A DNA stretch of 63,810 nt, filler included, from Perkinsus chesapeaki ATCC PRA-425 (taxonomy: Eukaryota > Protista > Perkinsozoa): NCBI GenBank assembly GCA_013115145.1. It is 10 parts of 10 records of this genome, joined end to end, with 100 filler letters (N's around TTAATTAATTAA, not from the genome) between each part and the next. Parts side by side here need not be neighbours in the genome. Positions count along the whole stretch, not along the records: positions 57,081 to 62,203 come from JAAPAO010001188.1; 9 more parts are not named here. One strand, given 5' to 3'. Numbering within the stretch: position 1 is the stretch's first letter; every line of letters begins with the position of its first letter. Below the pieces are notes generated by a model that did no database searches, was not told the DNA's origin, and saw only the letters and a list, made by a program, of their open reading frames with translations. Both the position numbers and the translations under genes were made by a program. Below are positions 4,701-62,203 of the stretch, one piece after another.

Positions 4701-7700
4701 TTTTGACAGGCCGAGCGAGATCGGCTCGAGTATGATTTCGAAAGACGCATCGAGGGAGAGAGAAACCAATGGGCAGGAAAGGTAGGTTTGCTCATAAATT
4801 TCTGGAGAAGATATTCCTGACAGGTTGCCCAGCTTGAAGCTAAAAATAATAGTTTGTCGCACGAGTTGGATGAGGCAAAAAAGCAGTCACATGAATTACG
4901 ATCACAATTGACGGCCGCGATGACCGAGGGAGCCGCGATGAAGAAGGGAGCGGCAGAGTCTGCCAGAGGAGAAGCTCAGCTGAGAGACACTGAAAGCAAA
5001 TTGGAAGAATCTAAAGCCAGGTGAGGAGGAACGATTACTTGAAGTAGCTTGCTTATTATTAATACATCGAACTCTCGGTTACAGACAGGTGATCTATGAG
5101 ATCGACGTGAGTACTGGCTTTCTATTAGAGCAATATTTTGACTAGTACGAACCAAGTGGCTCGGCTGAATGAGTTGCTCTGCTTAAAATGACGTTGGGCT
5201 GGTAGTGGACTATGATTCGATGTCAACAAGGCTTGCGGGAGTGATATCTCTTTCTTACGAAGATTGCTTGCTCTATTGCGTCAGATGTCTGTCGGGTTCG
5301 TTCACTGGGCGCTGATTGTGTTGTGGGTAGGTGCGTGGCTGCGGAGAAGTCTCTGTCCGATGCCTTAAGCGAGATGAAAGCGAAAGATGAGGAATTGGTG
5401 AAGTTGAGAGAAGTTACCGACAAGGTGAGATGGCTGATATTATTGATATATGATATATATTGAATAATAGTGTATTGTAGAAAATATGAACAAGTTAGTA
5501 TGATACCAACTTGCTTGTATCTTAAAATATAAATAAGGTACAGTATTACGATTCTTAGTACCTGTACCTGCACAGTAGTGCATGATTATACCTACTATAC
5601 ATCTGTGCCCATACATGCCAGTGAGGAGCGACTTGAACTTCAAGCTTGCAAAAATGGCGTTCTGTTTTTCTACTTGTGCCGATCAATTGCGCTCTCGGTG
5701 AGAAATATTTACCTAACGGAGGAAGGCTAACATTTCCTCCATCTTTGATGTATTCCAAATTAGCCTATATTATCGATTGGGAATCTTTTCCGCCTCTATC
5801 AGGCACGCTCCGAGCTGTCGGCAATGGTGGCCGACAAGGAAGCACTGCTGAAGGAGGTTGAGCGACTTCTGAAGGTAGAAGAAGAAGCTCGACGACAACC
5901 ACCTGTGGGGGGTGATGATTCGGTGAGCTAGAGTATAATAGGGATTTGGAAAGGTATCTTACGGTTTCAGATTCGAAAAGAGCTAGAAGCAGAAGTTGGA
6001 GAGAGAATGAGACAACTCGATGAAGTGCGAGCTGAGCTAGATGGAAGAGAACAGGAATGGTCAGCGGAGAGAGCAGAGCTTCAAGGTATGCTAGTAATTC
6101 CACGCTTCTACCGCCTTGTCGAAATTTCGCAGGAGTTTTTTGTCGCTTTGAGATAAGTTGATGGGTCTCAAGTGTTATCTGGCCTATATTGGTCCACTGG
6201 GGATCGAGTATTGTTCCTGATGCGTACATGTGTAAGAGATGTTTTTCTAGAAGCTAATTATATTCCTGACCAAAGGGAAGCATCGGGTGCTGGGAACGTC
6301 TGATGCATAGCTCGTTGCCCGAGAAAGCTTGATCATTATCAAGATCTTCCTTTATAACAAAAGGGAGTTGATTAGAGTCACTGCAACCGGGTTATAATAA
6401 TAACTATATAATGGGCATTGTTCATCATAAATGTTTTTATTAAACAAAACATACCCACTGACCCCTCTACCAGAGTTGGTTATTTCTTAACACTATAGTA
6501 TCCCAAGCAATACTCAATATTCGAAGCATCAACCCACTGTGAGTATCGATATAACAGAACTCACTCGGCTAAGTTTGTTACATTATTATCATAAACTCTC
6601 ACTTGTCCTCATTGCGATATTATAGTGCCTTTGAATCTGGTATGCGTAATACATTTCGGTGGAGACCAAGAGTCACGAAAATCCATGTTATAAATGATTT
6701 ATATTAAAGTCTTATCACACTCAAGAGTTGTCGTATGAGCTTGTCAAGACAAAGTTGTTGATCACTTCTTTCAGCTATATTGACCAACGAGAGAGAGTCT
6801 GCACAAAGGAGCAAGGAAGAGCATCTTTACGAGGTCTGAAATGTGATTCTTGTTTTCTCAAAGACTCGCCTTACACAGATAGAGTCGCTTAACGACTCAA
6901 TCGCCACTCTTCGCGGAAATATCAAAATACTGGAAAGAGCTCTGGCCGACTCGGCACTGCAACAGAATGAAGACGGACAGCAGGCACTCAAGTCGGCTCA
7001 ATAACTTATGCTGTTTTGAAATTGTTGCCTCAGGAGAAAGAAAACTCGGGTGCTGATTCAGGACGACGGGCCTCTTGATGACGGGAGCGGTACAGCATCA
7101 CAGACATGCATTTCGGGTATACAAAGCCGTCCGCACCTCCGAAGATTGATAGAAGCTTCGTTCAGGTCTGGCTCATGATGCTGGATTTTTTATGGTGTCT
7201 GAAGCGCCAGGCGAACTGGATGGACCTTCTGAGGCTTTCAAGATGGAACTTGAGGTGATTACTGTTGTTTTTGGCTGAATAGTGTAGATTTTAGGAGTTG
7301 GATTTGGTGGCCAGAACTATTTGGGAGGGGTATATGGATGTGCTTCATGCAGCTAGGAGACCACCTTTTGGTTATGGTGATGGTCAAACGAGGGTACATA
7401 GATTCACACGGTTGATTAAAAGTAAGAAGTGATGAGGAAATCAATGATCATCGCTAATGGCCCTGTTATTTACTAAGAAGCCATTTTAGCAGAGTACTGT
7501 ATGTCCTCGAGCCGAGCTTAGTTCGACTTCCGAAGTTTGCTTAATTTTCTCGCTTCGGAAACGTATGTTGGGGGTTGGGCATGCCTTGCAAGTTGTCATT
7601 CACTTTGTCCAGTGTTGAGGGTCCAATACCGCGAAAGGCCGAGGGGCATGGTATCGATCCAAGTCACAGATGTTCTTGTTGCTACAGGAAGGGCGTTAGT

Positions 7701-57080: not shown

Positions 57081-57224
57081 TTGTGGTGGTGGTCGTTGTA
57101 GTTGTTGTAGTTGTGGTGGTTGTTGTAGTTGTTGTAGTGGTAGTTGTGGTGGTCGTAGTTGTTGTAGTGGTGGTCGTAGTTGTTGTAGTGGTGGTCGTAG
57201 TTGTTGTAGTTGTGGTGGTCGTGG

Positions 57225-57225
<1 letters not shown>
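57081..57225 (-). repeat. (ACN)n tract, poly-Thr-coding on the - strand; 3' flank of the LINE
   Basis: Every triplet is ACA, ACC, ACG or ACT in one frame. Confidence 0.9.
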
Positions 57226-57273
<48 letters not shown>

Positions 57274-57354
57274 GTAGTTTAGAGTCCGACGCCAATATGG
57301 CTTAGTCAGACTGTCTTACACGTTGTTGCACTCGTATGTTCCCACTTAATAGTT

Positions 57355-60300
57355 CTAGTCGGTCAAGGCCCGGCCGGTCCCTAGGGACTCGACTGAGCGG
57401 CAGACCAGGTTTAATGACTTTAGCCGTTCCAAAGAGATAGAGTACTGGCCCACGGTACCAATTGTATTGTGCCAAGCTGGTCGATTGCGTATAATGGGAC
57501 AGACCATTATCTTGTGCTGACCGTCGTCTGTTACATCACAGTAGGGGCATAGAGGTGAGTCCTGCATTCCCAGGCGGTGCCGATAGGAGCCTAGGGATTT
57601 AGAGCGGTTCAGAAGGACCCTAATGACTGGAGGTAGGATGTCAGCATTAGACCAGACGAGTCTTCTTTGATGGTGCGAGCCAAGTAGCGATCGGACTGGC
57701 ATTTTACAGCTTAACAGATCTCTTTCCAAGTTACCGTTCATCTTTACCAGTAGCAGTCTCTTAGCGTTGGCCTTGGACCTGGCCACCGGTGTGAAGGTAG
57801 GTAGGCTGCGAGCCACATTAGCCGCCTTATCAGCGAGGTCGTTGCCCAGTATTTCGTCACTGTGGGATGGTATCCAGCAGAGCATAGATTTGGTCTCCTT
57901 AATCAGGTCCCTAATGAGGTTAAGAGGGTCCTTAGCGACGGTCGAGCAGATCGAGAGTAGTGCAGAGGAGGAGTCTGTGAAGATGTTGGCCTCTCCTGGC
58001 CGAAGAAAACGTCGGCAGTACTTGAGGGCTTCAAGTAGGGCTGCTATCTCGCATTGGGCTATGGTAGAGTGATCAGGTAGCCTCCAGTACTTTTGAGTCA
58101 CCACTAAGTCCGACGAGTCCATAACCACAAAAGCTGCTCCAGCAGTATTACTCTTGCAACATAGGGACCCGTCAGTATAGATCCTGTACTTAGATAGGTC
58201 TCTGGCATTGGCTAGTTCAATAGCTGAGCTTCTGTTCACCGATAACCGGACATGTCTTGTGCAGTCTTCATCCTTCCCGTCCATTCGGCCGTAAACCTCA
58301 AACTCTCGTGTTAGTGCTTCTGGGACAGCCTCACAGAGGTAGGCGGTGAACTTCTTCTTAACCGGCGTTTTAACGCCCAGAAGGAGACACTCCCTAAAGT
58401 CCTTGTTGTGTAGGTACTCGATACATGCCCGGTCCCGAAGGGTAACTGAGAGCGGGTGGCGGCCTGATAGTGCCAAAACCTCTCTTGTGGCCGAAAAGTG
58501 GGAGATCCTGTACGCAGACTTAAGGTACTTTGCCTGGAACTGGTCGAGAAGCTTCTGTGACCTCTTTTCAAAGAGGGTGCTACCATAGCAGCTCAGAGCA
58601 TAGGTTAGAGTCGGTACGATGACGACATCGAAGATCCTCAGCATAGCCGAGACCGAGAGACCGTAGTTCTTGCGGACATAACGGAGGACAGAGCCCAGCG
58701 TGCGTTGGCATTTCAAGATACCCTCTCTAAGGTGTAGGAAGCCGGATAAGGACTTGGGTAAAGTTACCCCTAGGATCCTGATCGATTGGCTCTGAAAACA
58801 CCGAGAGTTGTAGCTCGTTAAGACTTCCGTCTTCTCCATCGAGAGGGCGAGTCCTATCCTGTCCAAGTAGGTGCCCGCACAGAGTATACAAGCCCGGATT
58901 GTCTCGTCCATCTCATTGATAGGGAGGCCTTTCCGGAAGTTAAAGACCAGAAAGGAGTCGTCGGCATAGGAGAGGACGTTAACATTGTAGCCAGCGCCGT
59001 CATAGATGGGGTCCCTCTGCAGCTCGGATAAGGTGTCGAAGCAGACGATGTTGAAAAGTAGTGGACTGAGTATCGCCCCTTGAGGAGTGCCGCGGTCTCC
59101 GGGAGAGTAACGGTAGGTAGATACACCTAGGTAGTGGGCATGATTGACGCGTCCAGATAACCAGTTCATGATCCAGTTACATAAGGCCGGGTGGACATCG
59201 TGCTTGACCAAAGAATTAAGGATGGACTCGTGCTTGATGTTACCGAACGCGTTGGAGCAGTCCAAGGCCGCTATCGACCATACCTTTTTACCAGATACAT
59301 CCTTCCTTATCCTATTTACCAACCTGCTAGTGCTCCTGTTCGGTAGATAGCCAAACATCATGTCTGAGTTTAACATCATATCAACCATGCTTTGCAGTTT
59401 AGAGCCCACCACGGCCTCACATAGTTTACCGATCACTGAGAGAAGGGAGATAGGTCGGACACTGTTTATTTTGCCTTCGTTCTTTCCTTTCGGCAGGAAA
59501 CAAACCAGGGCAGATTTAAACGAGTTAGGCACGAAACCGAAGTTGATACAGGCTGTATATATACCAGCGAGCTCAGTGATGACCCAGTGGGGAGTTTCAG
59601 CTAGGTGCCGGAGCCGTAGGCCATCTTCACCACTGGCTTTATTCCAGTTCTTTCTTCTCGATCGGAGGATACTCTCCACTTCTTCAGCAGTAATGTGCGC
59701 CTCGGATGCAGAGCTCGTACTTAATATCGGCCAAGGCATAGCTTGGGGAGGTTCCTTAGAGCCTAGGTAAGTGTCAGATAGCCGTTCAACCGTTTCGTAG
59801 GGGGAGGAGTCGCCGATCAGTAAAGACGGACCAAGCCTAGCTGGTGACTTAACCTTCTTGAGGAAGTTCATATCCATTTCAATCCTGTTCGCAAAGGTCT
59901 CAAAACCTTTGCTTTTCTTGAGATCAATCAGCTCGCGGTAAGTGGTTCTCGACGCCTTATACTCCTCACTGCCTTTGCCATACAGTCGTTCTTGCCTCTT
60001 GAGGTTGGCACGGGCTTGTCGGCAATCATCATCCCACCACTGCTTATCCTTTCTTTGTCGAGGGGGCTTCTTCTTCGGCGTGGCTGCTCTGGCAGCTTCT
60101 TGTAGTCGTGCACGAAGGCTCTCTAACCTGAGTGATATAGTCTCTTCGTTCCGGATAGGAGTAGAAGTATCTAGTGGGTTCTTGGCCAAGAAGTCGTGGT
60201 ACATTTCCCAGTTTGTACGGGAAAAGCACAAATCGCTTAGAGCATTTTGCCCTGTCACCGAAGTATTATAGGGGTCCTCTTGGTTATTAGGGCCAGCCTT

Positions 60301-60942
60301 GAAGCTGATGATGAAGTGGTCACTCAGGGACTCTTCTTCGCTGACGTACCAGTCCCTAACTATTGTGTCAGAGCCATAGAGAGTTATGACCACTATGGAC
60401 TCCCTGGAGTCGTCGGTTGCAGAGGCGACATGTTTGTAGGTGGGCTTAAGGTTAATGGTGTCATTCGCACAGTTTAAGAGACAGGCATCCATGAACTCCG
60501 CTACTTGGTTGCCCGTACGGTTGGCGGCTCCATTTCTCCTCTCTGGATGAAGAACTCCCCATAGATCGTGATAGCCGTTGCAGTCGCCGGCCAAGATGAC
60601 GTCACCACGATGAAGGAGTGCATCACTTAGCTGCCAGAGAAAGAGGATGTCGTCAGAGCCAGGGGGAATATAAAAGGAGCAGACGCATAGGTTGCTGGAG
60701 GTGACCATTATAGACTCGTCAGAGGAGATGCTCGGGACCACAGCGAAAAGATGAGAGAGGTTGTGGTGGATATACACAGAGGCCTTCGAAGACTGGGAGT
60801 TCCTAAAACAGACATAACCCGACAAGTGGTATGCTCTTGGAGGTTCCTGAACAAGCAAAAAGTCGGGTTTAAAAATTTGAGAAATTGAGTTCATAGAGGC
60901 TTTTGATTTGTTACAATTTATCTGAATAAATTTATAAAACAT
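57355..60942 (-). CDS. LINE ORF2, 1195 aa: AP endonuclease, reverse transcriptase, RNase H, C-terminal Cys/His knuckle
   Basis: QINCN, VQEP, AGDCNG, SDH (EN); RPISLL, PQGAILSPLLF, YADD (RT); IYTDGS, CEIAA, FTDS, WIPSH, GNDLAD (RNase H); CPYC...H...C. Confidence 0.95.
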   Translation of the reverse strand: MFYKFIQINCNKSKASMNSISQIFKPDFLLVQEPPRAYHLSGYVCFRNSQSSKASVYIHHNLSHLFAVVPSISSDESIMVTSSNLCVCSFYIPPGSDDILFLWQLSDALLHRGDVILAGDCNGYHDLWGVLHPERRNGAANRTGNQVAEFMDACLLNCANDTINLKPTYKHVASATDDSRESIVVITLYGSDTIVRDWYVSEEESLSDHFIISFKAGPNNQEDPYNTSVTGQNALSDLCFSRTNWEMYHDFLAKNPLDTSTPIRNEETISLRLESLRARLQEAARAATPKKKPPRQRKDKQWWDDDCRQARANLKRQERLYGKGSEEYKASRTTYRELIDLKKSKGFETFANRIEMDMNFLKKVKSPARLGPSLLIGDSSPYETVERLSDTYLGSKEPPQAMPWPILSTSSASEAHITAEEVESILRSRRKNWNKASGEDGLRLRHLAETPHWVITELAGIYTACINFGFVPNSFKSALVCFLPKGKNEGKINSVRPISLLSVIGKLCEAVVGSKLQSMVDMMLNSDMMFGYLPNRSTSRLVNRIRKDVSGKKVWSIAALDCSNAFGNIKHESILNSLVKHDVHPALCNWIMNWLSGRVNHAHYLGVSTYRYSPGDRGTPQGAILSPLLFNIVCFDTLSELQRDPIYDGAGYNVNVLSYADDSFLVFNFRKGLPINEMDETIRACILCAGTYLDRIGLALSMEKTEVLTSYNSRCFQSQSIRILGVTLPKSLSGFLHLREGILKCQRTLGSVLRYVRKNYGLSVSAMLRIFDVVIVPTLTYALSCYGSTLFEKRSQKLLDQFQAKYLKSAYRISHFSATREVLALSGRHPLSVTLRDRACIEYLHNKDFRECLLLGVKTPVKKKFTAYLCEAVPEALTREFEVYGRMDGKDEDCTRHVRLSVNRSSAIELANARDLSKYRIYTDGSLCCKSNTAGAAFVVMDSSDLVVTQKYWRLPDHSTIAQCEIAALLEALKYCRRFLRPGEANIFTDSSSALLSICSTVAKDPLNLIRDLIKETKSMLCWIPSHSDEILGNDLADKAANVARSLPTFTPVARSKANAKRLLLVKMNGNLERDLLSCKMPVRSLLGSHHQRRLVWSNADILPPVIRVLLNRSKSLGSYRHRLGMQDSPLCPYCDVTDDGQHKIMVCPIIRNRPAWHNTIGTVGQYSISLERLKSLNLVCRSVESLGTGRALTD

Positions 60943-60980
60943 TGATAAAATAATAGGTGTTAGTTGCTGGTCATCCCCGT

Positions 60981-62036
60981 CTACTGACAGGGAAGAGGTC
61001 CGTCGCCATAGTCAGTCATGTTGACCTTCCTCTGCTTCAACTCATTGGTCTTATGACAACATGAGTTGTCTCCTCTGAAAGGCGTGTGGCCCTCTAGACC
61101 GCATAGGCAGCACTTCAATCTATCAGGGAAGCCCTCGATCGGGCATTCCCCCGGTTTAAGAGAGTGCTTACCACAGCACCTAACACAGATCCTGTCTTCA
61201 GGTTTGGTCTTACAGTTTGCGGGGTTGGCATGGGCTTTGCCACAGGTCAAACATACTCGGACGGTGACCACGTCCTTGCACTTCAGCTTCTGGCCTTTGA
61301 CGAAGCAACCGCCTCTGGATATAAGCTCCTTCCTCTGGTCTGCATTCATGCGGTAGATGGTGATCTTATCGTTGGACCTGACTGTATGCCAGGTGCTCGG
61401 ATCCAGCTTGGGATTGTGGGTCTTGATGTCGGCGGGCAGGTTTTGGATGTCTTCTTGATAGTCGCCGGTAAAAATTAATACTTCAGGCTGAAGCTTGGGG
61501 GCTACACCTGCAGTAAACGGAAGATGATTCTGTACCAGCTTACTTTGGATGTCCTCCACAGCCGTCGAAGGGGAGGTGATAACCTCAATACCCTGCTGGC
61601 GTGGTTTGATTCTAATGATCTCTAGTCCATCCAAAGCGTCTTTGATCTTCTTTAGGTTAGCATCTTGACTATCCACTGGCTGTGGGGTAGTCGGGTTGAG
61701 CAAGACAGACTTGTTCTTCACATTAGGAGTAAAAACGCGATTGGTACTTGGCGGCTGTACACCGCTCACTGCAGCGTCTCTATACGAGCGCTGCCAGGGG
61801 TTATCTACACTATCTTCTAAATCCTTCCTAAGGCTTCTATTCTCTTCTAATAATTCAAAAAGATACAGACGAACCTCACTTACTAGCTTCTCTCCTAGTT
61901 CTCCTCTTTCTTTGGAGATCCTCTTATTAGCCTCATACTTCACAAGGTCCTCAATCTGGTTAAGGACCTTCGAAATGGGGGCTCGTCCGTCACTGTCGCA
62001 GCTAGCTGCGTCGCTGTTGTCAGGGATGGAAGACAT
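60981..62036 (-). CDS. LINE ORF1, 351 aa, gag-like with three C-terminal Cys/His knuckles
   Basis: N-terminal coiled coil, then CLTCGKAHANPANC, CVRCCGKHSLKPGEC and CCLCGLEGH. Confidence 0.88.
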   Translation of the reverse strand: MSSIPDNSDAASCDSDGRAPISKVLNQIEDLVKYEANKRISKERGELGEKLVSEVRLYLFELLEENRSLRKDLEDSVDNPWQRSYRDAAVSGVQPPSTNRVFTPNVKNKSVLLNPTTPQPVDSQDANLKKIKDALDGLEIIRIKPRQQGIEVITSPSTAVEDIQSKLVQNHLPFTAGVAPKLQPEVLIFTGDYQEDIQNLPADIKTHNPKLDPSTWHTVRSNDKITIYRMNADQRKELISRGGCFVKGQKLKCKDVVTVRVCLTCGKAHANPANCKTKPEDRICVRCCGKHSLKPGECPIEGFPDRLKCCLCGLEGHTPFRGDNSCCHKTNELKQRKVNMTDYGDGPLPCQ

Positions 62037-62076
62037 ATGAGCTTGAGGGCTCTTATAGCGGGGAAGTCAACTAAGA

Positions 62077-62090
62077 CTTGAGCCAAGATG
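62077..62090 (-). other. Spliced-leader relic at the LINE 5' end
   Basis: CATCTTGGCTCAAG equals the last 14 nt of the Perkinsus SL ACCGTAGCCATCTTGGCTCAAG. It is not followed by GT, so it has the spliced (mRNA) form. Confidence 0.85.
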
Positions 62091-62091
62091 T

Positions 62092-62203
62092 GTGGTCGTG
62101 GTAGTTGTAGTGGTGGTGGTCGTAGTTGTTGTAGTTGTGGTCGTGGTAGTTGTGGTGGTTGTTGTAGTTGTGGTGGTGGTTGTAGTTGTAGTTGTGGTGG
62201 TCG
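62092..62203 (-). repeat. (ACN)n tract, poly-Thr-coding on the - strand; 5' flank of the LINE
   Basis: All triplets are ACN, in frame with the 3' flank once the element and one TSD are removed. Confidence 0.9.

Follow-up and report, generated by a model that had tools for sequence, protein, structure and literature searches.

The window analysed here is a stretch of 63,810 nt from Perkinsus chesapeaki ATCC PRA-425 (GCA_013115145.1), made up of 10 parts separated by filler, one of which holds an intact long interspersed nuclear element (LINE) that begins with a fragment of the host spliced leader (SL). Our reading, which we consider probable as a whole, is that this 14-nt fragment is a true remnant of the L-type SL, that the template of the insertion was a trans-spliced RNA, and that the AG closing the relic is used again as an acceptor. 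Judging from how the sequences are arranged, it is very likely that SL-capped LINE mRNA served as the transposition template, at least repeatedly in evolution. Trans-splicing before reverse transcription is the most parsimonious explanation, since an SL piece reaching to the end of the SL exon lies inside an insertion bounded by target site duplications (TSDs) and is joined to several different starts of the 5' untranslated region (UTR). The phenomenon is a variant of relic-SL retroposition, here on an autonomous LINE and throughout a clade.

The contig JAAPAO010001188.1, in its entire length of 5123 bp, occupies positions 57081-62203 of the window, and all coordinates of the element refer to the minus strand. 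Read in the sense of the element, the flanks, TSDs, open reading frames (ORFs) and other features are as follows.

62103-62203, minus strand: 5' flank, a host poly-Thr (ACN)n tract, one sense frame of which is all Thr, with all four ACN codons used
62092-62102, minus strand: 5' copy of the TSD, ACCACGACCAC (11 nt); the same 11-mer stands after the tail
62091, minus strand: lone extra A separating the TSD from the relic, agreeing with neither C8 of the SL nor the 3' flank
62077-62090, minus strand: SL relic CATCTTGGCTCAAG, 14 nt, positions 9-22 of the L-type SL, an exact suffix match to PmaSL1
62037-62076, minus strand: 5'UTR of 40 nt with TAGTTGA at 62073-62067
60981-62036, minus strand: ORF1, 351 aa, ATG at 62036, with CCHC-like zinc knuckles at the C-terminus
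between ORF1 and ORF2, minus strand: spacer of 38 nt
57355-60942, minus strand: ORF2, 1195 aa, intact, with apurinic/apyrimidinic (AP) endonuclease, reverse transcriptase (YADD, residue 659) and RNase H
downstream of ORF2, minus strand: 3'UTR of 82 nt, bearing a stem-loop
57283-57312, minus strand: conserved 3'UTR stem-loop (fold z = -2.6, plus compensatory changes)
57225-57272, minus strand: tail (CAA)16 = (ACA)16, in phase with the Thr tract beyond
57215-57225, minus strand: 3' copy of the TSD, ACCACGACCAC, its first A doubling as a tail base
57081-57214, minus strand: 3' flank, where the host poly-Thr tract resumes

The relic is identical to positions 9-22 of PmaSL1, ACCGTAGCCATCTTGGCTCAAG, and includes the C of TCTT, by which the Perkinsus SL differs from the TTTT of dinoflagellates (PMC3101222, PMC9399869). 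It is followed by TC, not GT, and its terminal AG is a possible trans-splice acceptor. An earlier note on this DNA had described 14 nt of the Perkinsus SL end between the TSD plus one base and a 40-nt UTR, which is confirmed at 62090-62077; the range it gave, 62037-62102, does contain the relic but extends over the UTR and the TSD as well. About 4e-5 matches to a given 14-mer are expected by chance in 2 x 5123 nt. The junction is no assembly artefact, because the succession of flank, relic and UTR is reproduced in Logan contigs of two studies, the contig of the second study (run X2, 1951 nt) spanning all three with 0 differences.

AP endonuclease, reverse transcriptase and RNase H in ORF2, a TSD, a simple-repeat tail and the existence of a 5'-truncated relative (L003) identify the element as an AP endonuclease (APE)-type LINE. 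The ORF2 matches to Pfam lie above the curated cut-offs (RVT_1 2e-30, Exo_endo_phos_2 3e-11, RNase_H 9e-10), and homologues of ORF1 are limited to Perkinsus LINEs and a few metagenomic proteins. The Thr-tract target proposed earlier also stands, as the insertion lies in a pure poly-Thr (ACN)n tract: removal of the insertion together with one TSD copy rebuilds an empty site of 81 unbroken Thr codons in which all four ACN codons occur. The body of the element has a contig depth of about 102, compared with 100-106 in adjoining single-copy contigs, and among P. chesapeaki DNA contigs one contig per run covers the element at 85% identity or more; it is therefore single-copy in this genome. Intact ORFs, a perfect TSD and the single copy point to a young insertion.

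Relatives were gathered through homologues of ORF2 and ORF1 (by exhaustive phmmer for ORF1) and through contig look-ups, which gave 14 Perkinsus loci, and at each locus the exact SL suffix immediately 5' of the UTR was measured. An SL relic is present in 12 of 12 independent near-full-length insertions, which represent at least six subfamilies in P. chesapeaki, P. olseni and P. marinus.

Window, P. chesapeaki: SL suffix of 14 nt
L001, P. olseni: 14 nt, junction CTCAAG followed by ATCTTAGTTGA
L004, P. chesapeaki: at least 14 nt, the contig beginning at the relic
L006, P. chesapeaki: 11 nt of the S-type SL, TCTGGCTCAAG
L010, P. marinus: 10 nt
L011, L012 and L013, P. olseni: 10 nt, a single locus in three isolates
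L005 and L014, P. olseni: 6 nt each, 96.8% identical with differing flanks
L007, P. marinus: 4-6 nt
L008 and L009, P. chesapeaki: 2-4 nt, TSDs CACCTCCCA and CTACGACCACA setting the boundary just 5' of the AG
Twelfth insertion, P. chesapeaki (loose end in run X1 at window 62090-62119): 6 nt, with ACGACCACA, CTCAAG and TTAGTTTGATTTCCCC in succession

Of the remaining loci, L003 is deeply truncated at its 5' end and lies within an (ACN)n tract, and L002 is without a 5' end because its contig stops there. The SL portion ends at G22 in every copy and is joined to a UTR of 26-52 nt that differs among subfamilies. The terminal AG is kept in all 12 copies, and the relic bases are those of a genuine SL variant without exception, both L-type and S-type being represented. 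No copy starting within the UTR and no tandem relic occur among the 12 insertions. TSDs are also seen in L008, L009 and L011. As ORF1 identity between families is only 28-33%, the relic architecture must be old and family-wide.

Two proposals of the earlier note are upheld by this survey. The relic derives from trans-spliced RNA and not from an SL RNA gene, given that it lies inside the TSD, stops at the SL exon end and recurs in 12 insertions, and an SL-capped mRNA template is supported by the same junction architecture in each of these independent events. A third, that variable SL truncations should be found at one junction, holds across subfamilies but fails within them (14, 14 and at least 14 nt in one; 6 and 6 nt in another). 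Neither of two outcomes that would have contradicted the proposals was seen when looked for: no full-length copy has a longer 5' end lacking the SL, and orientation is not random.

Further regularities are found just downstream of the junction. TAGTTG(A/G) sits 1-4 nt past it and is invariant, the form TAGTTGA (window 62073-62067) being invariant in families A, C and D, while the block TATAAGAGC is conserved within subfamily A1. In family B, the junction falls directly on TTG, as would result from splicing at the TAG acceptor in an ancestral copy of the form AAG-N-TAG-TTG; such a shift of acceptor would require a new splicing event on a genomic copy. An Rfam scan of the piece gave no 5' ribozyme, only a chance hammerhead match inside ORF2, and the 5' region has no significant overall fold (z = -0.46). 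Consequently, trans-splicing is the sole visible processing route, if precursors are processed. A small hairpin lies across the SL-UTR junction in subfamily A1 (window 62063-62080, L001 427-447, L004 10-27), with stems AAGTC/GACTT, AGATC/GATCT and AGAT/ATCT, respectively, and TTAGTT in the loop; the changes are compensatory (n = 3).

All six insertions within Thr/Ser-rich tracts (window, L002, L003, L007, L009 and L011) are in sense orientation. The hosts of L002 and L011 are real mucin-like genes, because the host frame runs on into conserved Cys-rich modules. In these P. olseni host genes (L002 3906-4580; L011 9480-10800 and 4200-4534), Thr/Ser repeats alternate with a Cys-rich module of the pattern GDC.DADAFCDSIKPHSYCMYW...CHGT.V.CSC; in L011, public annotation has a gene on the other strand there. 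The tail, (CAA)n or equivalently (ACA)n, is continuous with the (ACN)n target in the window, L002, L009 and L010, and L011 combines a (CAC)n-like tail with an ACC-rich target. Kojima and Fujiwara reportedly described repeat-specific LINEs that target microsatellites under the direction of their tails, and the Perkinsus elements resemble these in having a (CAA/ACA)n tail that matches an (ACN)n target, and short TSDs. They differ from them in that the target is a coding poly-Thr or mucin-like repeat, into which insertion occurs in phase and in sense.

These observations can be assembled into the following model. In Perkinsus, transcripts of the LINE clade very likely receive the SL by trans-splicing at a junction 26-52 nt 5' of ORF1, and the resulting SL-capped mRNA serves as the template of target-primed reverse transcription. 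The new copy then inherits the 3' part of the SL (2 to at least 14 nt) with its terminal AG, immediately inside the TSD, and the match between the (ACA/CAA)n tail and (ACN)n steers many insertions, in sense, into Thr-rich mucin-like ORFs. Once transcribed from upstream, the copy could be re-trans-spliced at the relic AG, giving the same SL-UTR junction again. No build-up of tandem relics would be expected, because relics of 14 nt or less are without the internal AG of the SL (positions 6-7). Renewal has probably taken place repeatedly, at least on an evolutionary time scale; that it occurs regularly at the relic AG we consider evenly poised. In the strictest form of the model, host read-through RNA would be cut at the 2-nt AG left by the previous SL, and trans-splicing would both cap the RNA and restore its 5' end in every cycle. 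We regard this promoterless, host-riding form as doubtful.

Several observations weigh against this model and its strict form. Six copies (L001, L005, L006, L008, L010 and L014) lie outside recognisable sense ORFs, in unique DNA or non-coding repeats, and L010 adjoins a divergently oriented DnaJ gene. The co-orientation with host transcription expected in the earlier note is found for all insertions in Thr-rich ORFs, but half of the copies are outside mucin-like ORFs. Moreover, sense orientation is fixed by the chemistry of integration, because pairing of an (ACA)n tail requires the (NGT)n bottom strand; since tail/target complementarity dictates it, orientation is no independent evidence for host-driven transcription. 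Two small runs of 2015, guessed to be RNA, contain 0 contigs of the window element. Relic lengths cluster at 14, 10, 6 and 2-4 nt, they are uniform within subfamilies (14, 14 and at least 14 nt in A1; 6 and 6 nt in L005 and L014), and L-type and S-type relics segregate by family. This uniformity disfavours full renewal combined with random truncation, and requires either arrest hot spots or a heritable 5' end.

A heritable 5' end is what the most successful alternative supposes. An inherited relic combined with an internal promoter is a serious rival to a self-renewing promoterless mechanism, even if we judge it improbable overall. According to this explanation, an ancestral LINE was retroposed from trans-spliced RNA on one or a few occasions, its partial SL has ever since belonged to the UTR as an ordinary, conserved stretch, and transcription starts at the first base of the element from a promoter involving, for example, TAGTTG or TATAAGAG; there would be no renewal, no dependence on the host, and slow erosion of the 5' end. 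Uniform relic length in each subfamily, including the 2-4 nt shared by L008 and L009, and the segregation of SL types follow readily from it, as do the copies outside host ORFs, and promoter elements may be present in the UTR in the form of the invariant TAGTTG(A/G) and further conserved blocks. Internal promoters are also known from jockey and the I factor. The statement in the earlier note that the element has no room for one must be given up, as LINEs are known to have internal promoters of 30-80 nt, such as Pr77 of L1Tc (PMC1874656), and the UTR contains invariant motifs. A fixed start, however, is at odds with a distance between the 5' end and TAGTTG that varies from 7 to 18 nt between subfamilies. 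Lengths of 6 and 10 nt turn up in more than one subfamily and species; either model therefore needs hot spots at which the cDNA stops or is joined, and the argument from uniform length against renewal is thereby weakened, not removed. Microhomology between target end and SL at the truncation points (2-nt overlap) accounts for L007, L008 and L009 only, not for the 14-nt class. An Sm site or arrest of the reverse transcriptase may instead underlie the classes of 14, 10, 6 and 2 nt. Erosion would also have to spare the relic, which is 100% identical to the SL across families whose UTRs cannot be aligned apart from TAGTTG, whose sole variant is a genuine S-type SL, and whose AG has been lost in 0 copies. 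Finally, the family B junction on TTG would imply new trans-splicing of a genomic copy, in line with reuse of genomic copies as trans-splicing substrates.

An origin from an SL RNA gene, through a master copy in or behind such a gene and driven by its promoter, or through a template switch of the reverse transcriptase onto SL RNA, is highly improbable. Template switching of this kind is known from U6/L1 chimaeras, and the GTAG that comes after the relic in families C and D matches the opening 4 nt of the SL intron GTAGATATC (P. marinus, L-type). However, there is no similarity to the SL intron past GTAG, and since TAG belongs to the conserved UTR motif, only one extra matching G is needed. No donor is present in the window or in families A and B, where TC, AT or TT comes next after the relic, and the SL part stops at the exon end in all subfamilies. 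SLACS, CZAR and CRE of trypanosomatids and NeSL-1 of nematodes are LINEs that carry a restriction-enzyme-like (REL) endonuclease and insert into SL RNA genes, and the Perkinsus elements resemble them in being physically tied to SL sequence. In those elements the SL is the target DNA, whereas in the Perkinsus LINEs it enters as a piece of the RNA that is transposed; their endonuclease is APE-type and not REL-type, and beyond the TSDs stand Thr tracts or unrelated DNA, not SL genes. Chance resemblance or an assembly artefact is a negligible explanation in view of the expectation per piece given above, the same structural position in 12 insertions and the agreement of the second-study contigs.

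We return to the reading of the 14 nt as the relic of a trans-spliced template, for which the closest precedent is found in retroposed genes. Relic SLs are the usual tag of such genes in dinoflagellates and in Perkinsus (Slamovits and Keeling 2008; DinoRL, PMC12014239, PMC6050394), and the LINEs share with them a DNA-encoded partial SL directly 5' of the transcript body, stemming from a reverse-transcribed trans-spliced mRNA. In all 12 insertions, the partial SL runs to the exon end with no SL intron after it, families C and D continuing with GTAG. Reuse of the relic AG as an acceptor is a feature of the dinoflagellate relics, and we infer it for the Perkinsus LINEs. Dinoflagellate retrogenes reuse the internal AG of the SL at positions 6-7, which leads to 15-nt relics in tandem (PMC12014239), while those of the Perkinsus LINEs do not exceed 14 nt, stand alone and directly adjoin the TSD. 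Furthermore, the tagged RNA is here that of an autonomous LINE, itself the likely source of reverse transcriptase, and the tag is family-wide. A second parallel is offered by R2 and L1Tc, which are transcribed as part of host units and freed by a 5' ribozyme resembling that of hepatitis delta virus (HDV) (PMC3185411, PMC3383444). If the promoterless model holds, the likeness would extend to co-transcripts without a promoter of their own and to RNA processing that restores the 5' end in each cycle. The processing of the Perkinsus LINE would, unlike theirs, consist of host trans-splicing at a 2-nt acceptor, and no HDV-like ribozyme was found.

Similar junctions have been recorded before in P. 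marinus. Zhang et al. 2011 reported more than 100 'SL-like' loci, left unexplained and regarded as non-functional SL-like genes (PMC3101222). The primers placed on them read CTCAAG followed by ATCTTAGTG, and CTCAAG followed by TGTTGTATTTTT and, further on, ATG, that is, a short UTR with no intron downstream. This is the junction seen in the Perkinsus LINEs, not recognised in that study as a LINE 5' end, and from its sequence the 'SL-like' loci are most likely LINE 5' ends. L010 (P. marinus; 5870-5950) sits in a (CAA)n(CTACAA)n stretch, before which comes a 3'-end-like motif. The target of this copy was probably the tail of an older, truncated one, as in head-to-tail arrays, and the arrangement may be related to the 'tandem repeats' of SL-like sequences described in the same study (PMC3101222).

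SL relics at the 5' ends of LINEs are not described in the literature searched, the coverage of which is incomplete, so that this is absence of evidence only. The survey shows a whole LINE clade that very likely propagates from SL-capped mRNA while keeping a minimal acceptor AG in each copy, and this clade is a concrete candidate for the engine that supplied reverse transcriptase behind the SL-tagged retroposed genes of dinoflagellates and perkinsids. A self-renewing promoterless mechanism is plausible, and offers a testable model for promoter-independent LINE expression via host trans-splicing. If true, it would be the trans-splicing counterpart of the ribozyme strategy of R2 and L1Tc, and would directly tie SL trans-splicing to the retroposition machinery in the dinoflagellate/perkinsid lineage. 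In practical terms, an SL suffix together with TAGTTG is an annotation marker for full-length Perkinsus LINEs, which are now mis-modelled as fusion genes of host, ORF1 and ORF2. The annotated protein FOL47_000881 is such a fusion of ORF1 and ORF2. Public gene models fuse either ORF1 with ORF2 (P0001, 1499 aa; window 57355-62036) or the host Thr tract with ORF1 (P0126, 660 aa; L009 150-2184). Because annotated relatives are long fusion models, length-filtered or word-index protein searches with ORF1 alone find nothing.

The 3' end of the element is conserved as well. Just 5' of the tail, an outer helix of 7-8 bp (GUCUGAC/GUCGGAC) encloses a small hairpin, with compensatory changes in 6 of 12 pairs among six elements; the corresponding structures lie at 5248-5296 in L001, 3848-3896 in L002, 8990-9040 in L008, 5936-5990 in L009 and 9414-9466 in L011. 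From this conservation, the stem-loop is probably a recognition element for the reverse transcriptase. The last 50 nt or so (57262-57315) have about 13 times the contig depth of the body (1340 vs 102 in run X1, 1239 vs 178 in run X2), and only these and the Thr flank are multi-copy in P. chesapeaki. This 3' end is common to many other P. chesapeaki elements, which may be non-autonomous. The contig of run X1 has a 14-nt insertion, AGTCAGACTGTCTG, a local duplication at window 57303 in the 3'UTR, representing a polymorphism or an assembly difference.

Some minor observations concern target sites and SL-like sequences elsewhere. At the twelfth insertion, the 30-nt Thr-tract motif ending in ACGACCACA is the same as in the window, but the LINE UTR, TTAGTTTGATTTCCCC, is different; the use of one target motif by two subfamilies suggests a target preference at the nucleotide level. 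The flank of L014 (P. olseni, 1360-1426) consists of a tandem palindromic repeat, GGTAGTACTACC, in which ACCGTAG, the first 7 nt of the SL, occurs three times, probably by coincidence. A scan of metagenomes for the 14-mer plus TAGTTG returned 16 loci, rejected as chance or unrelated matches since 0 of 16 have ORF1 or ORF2 homology. The metagenomic contig CAAAAM010008482.1 (L024, 152-185) has an SL-like 22-mer, TCCGTATCCATCTTGGCTCAAG, that begins with T, agrees with PmaSL1 at 20 of 22 positions and is directly followed by TAGTTG, a short UTR and an ATG. It shows no LINE homology and may be a retrogene of an environmental perkinsid.
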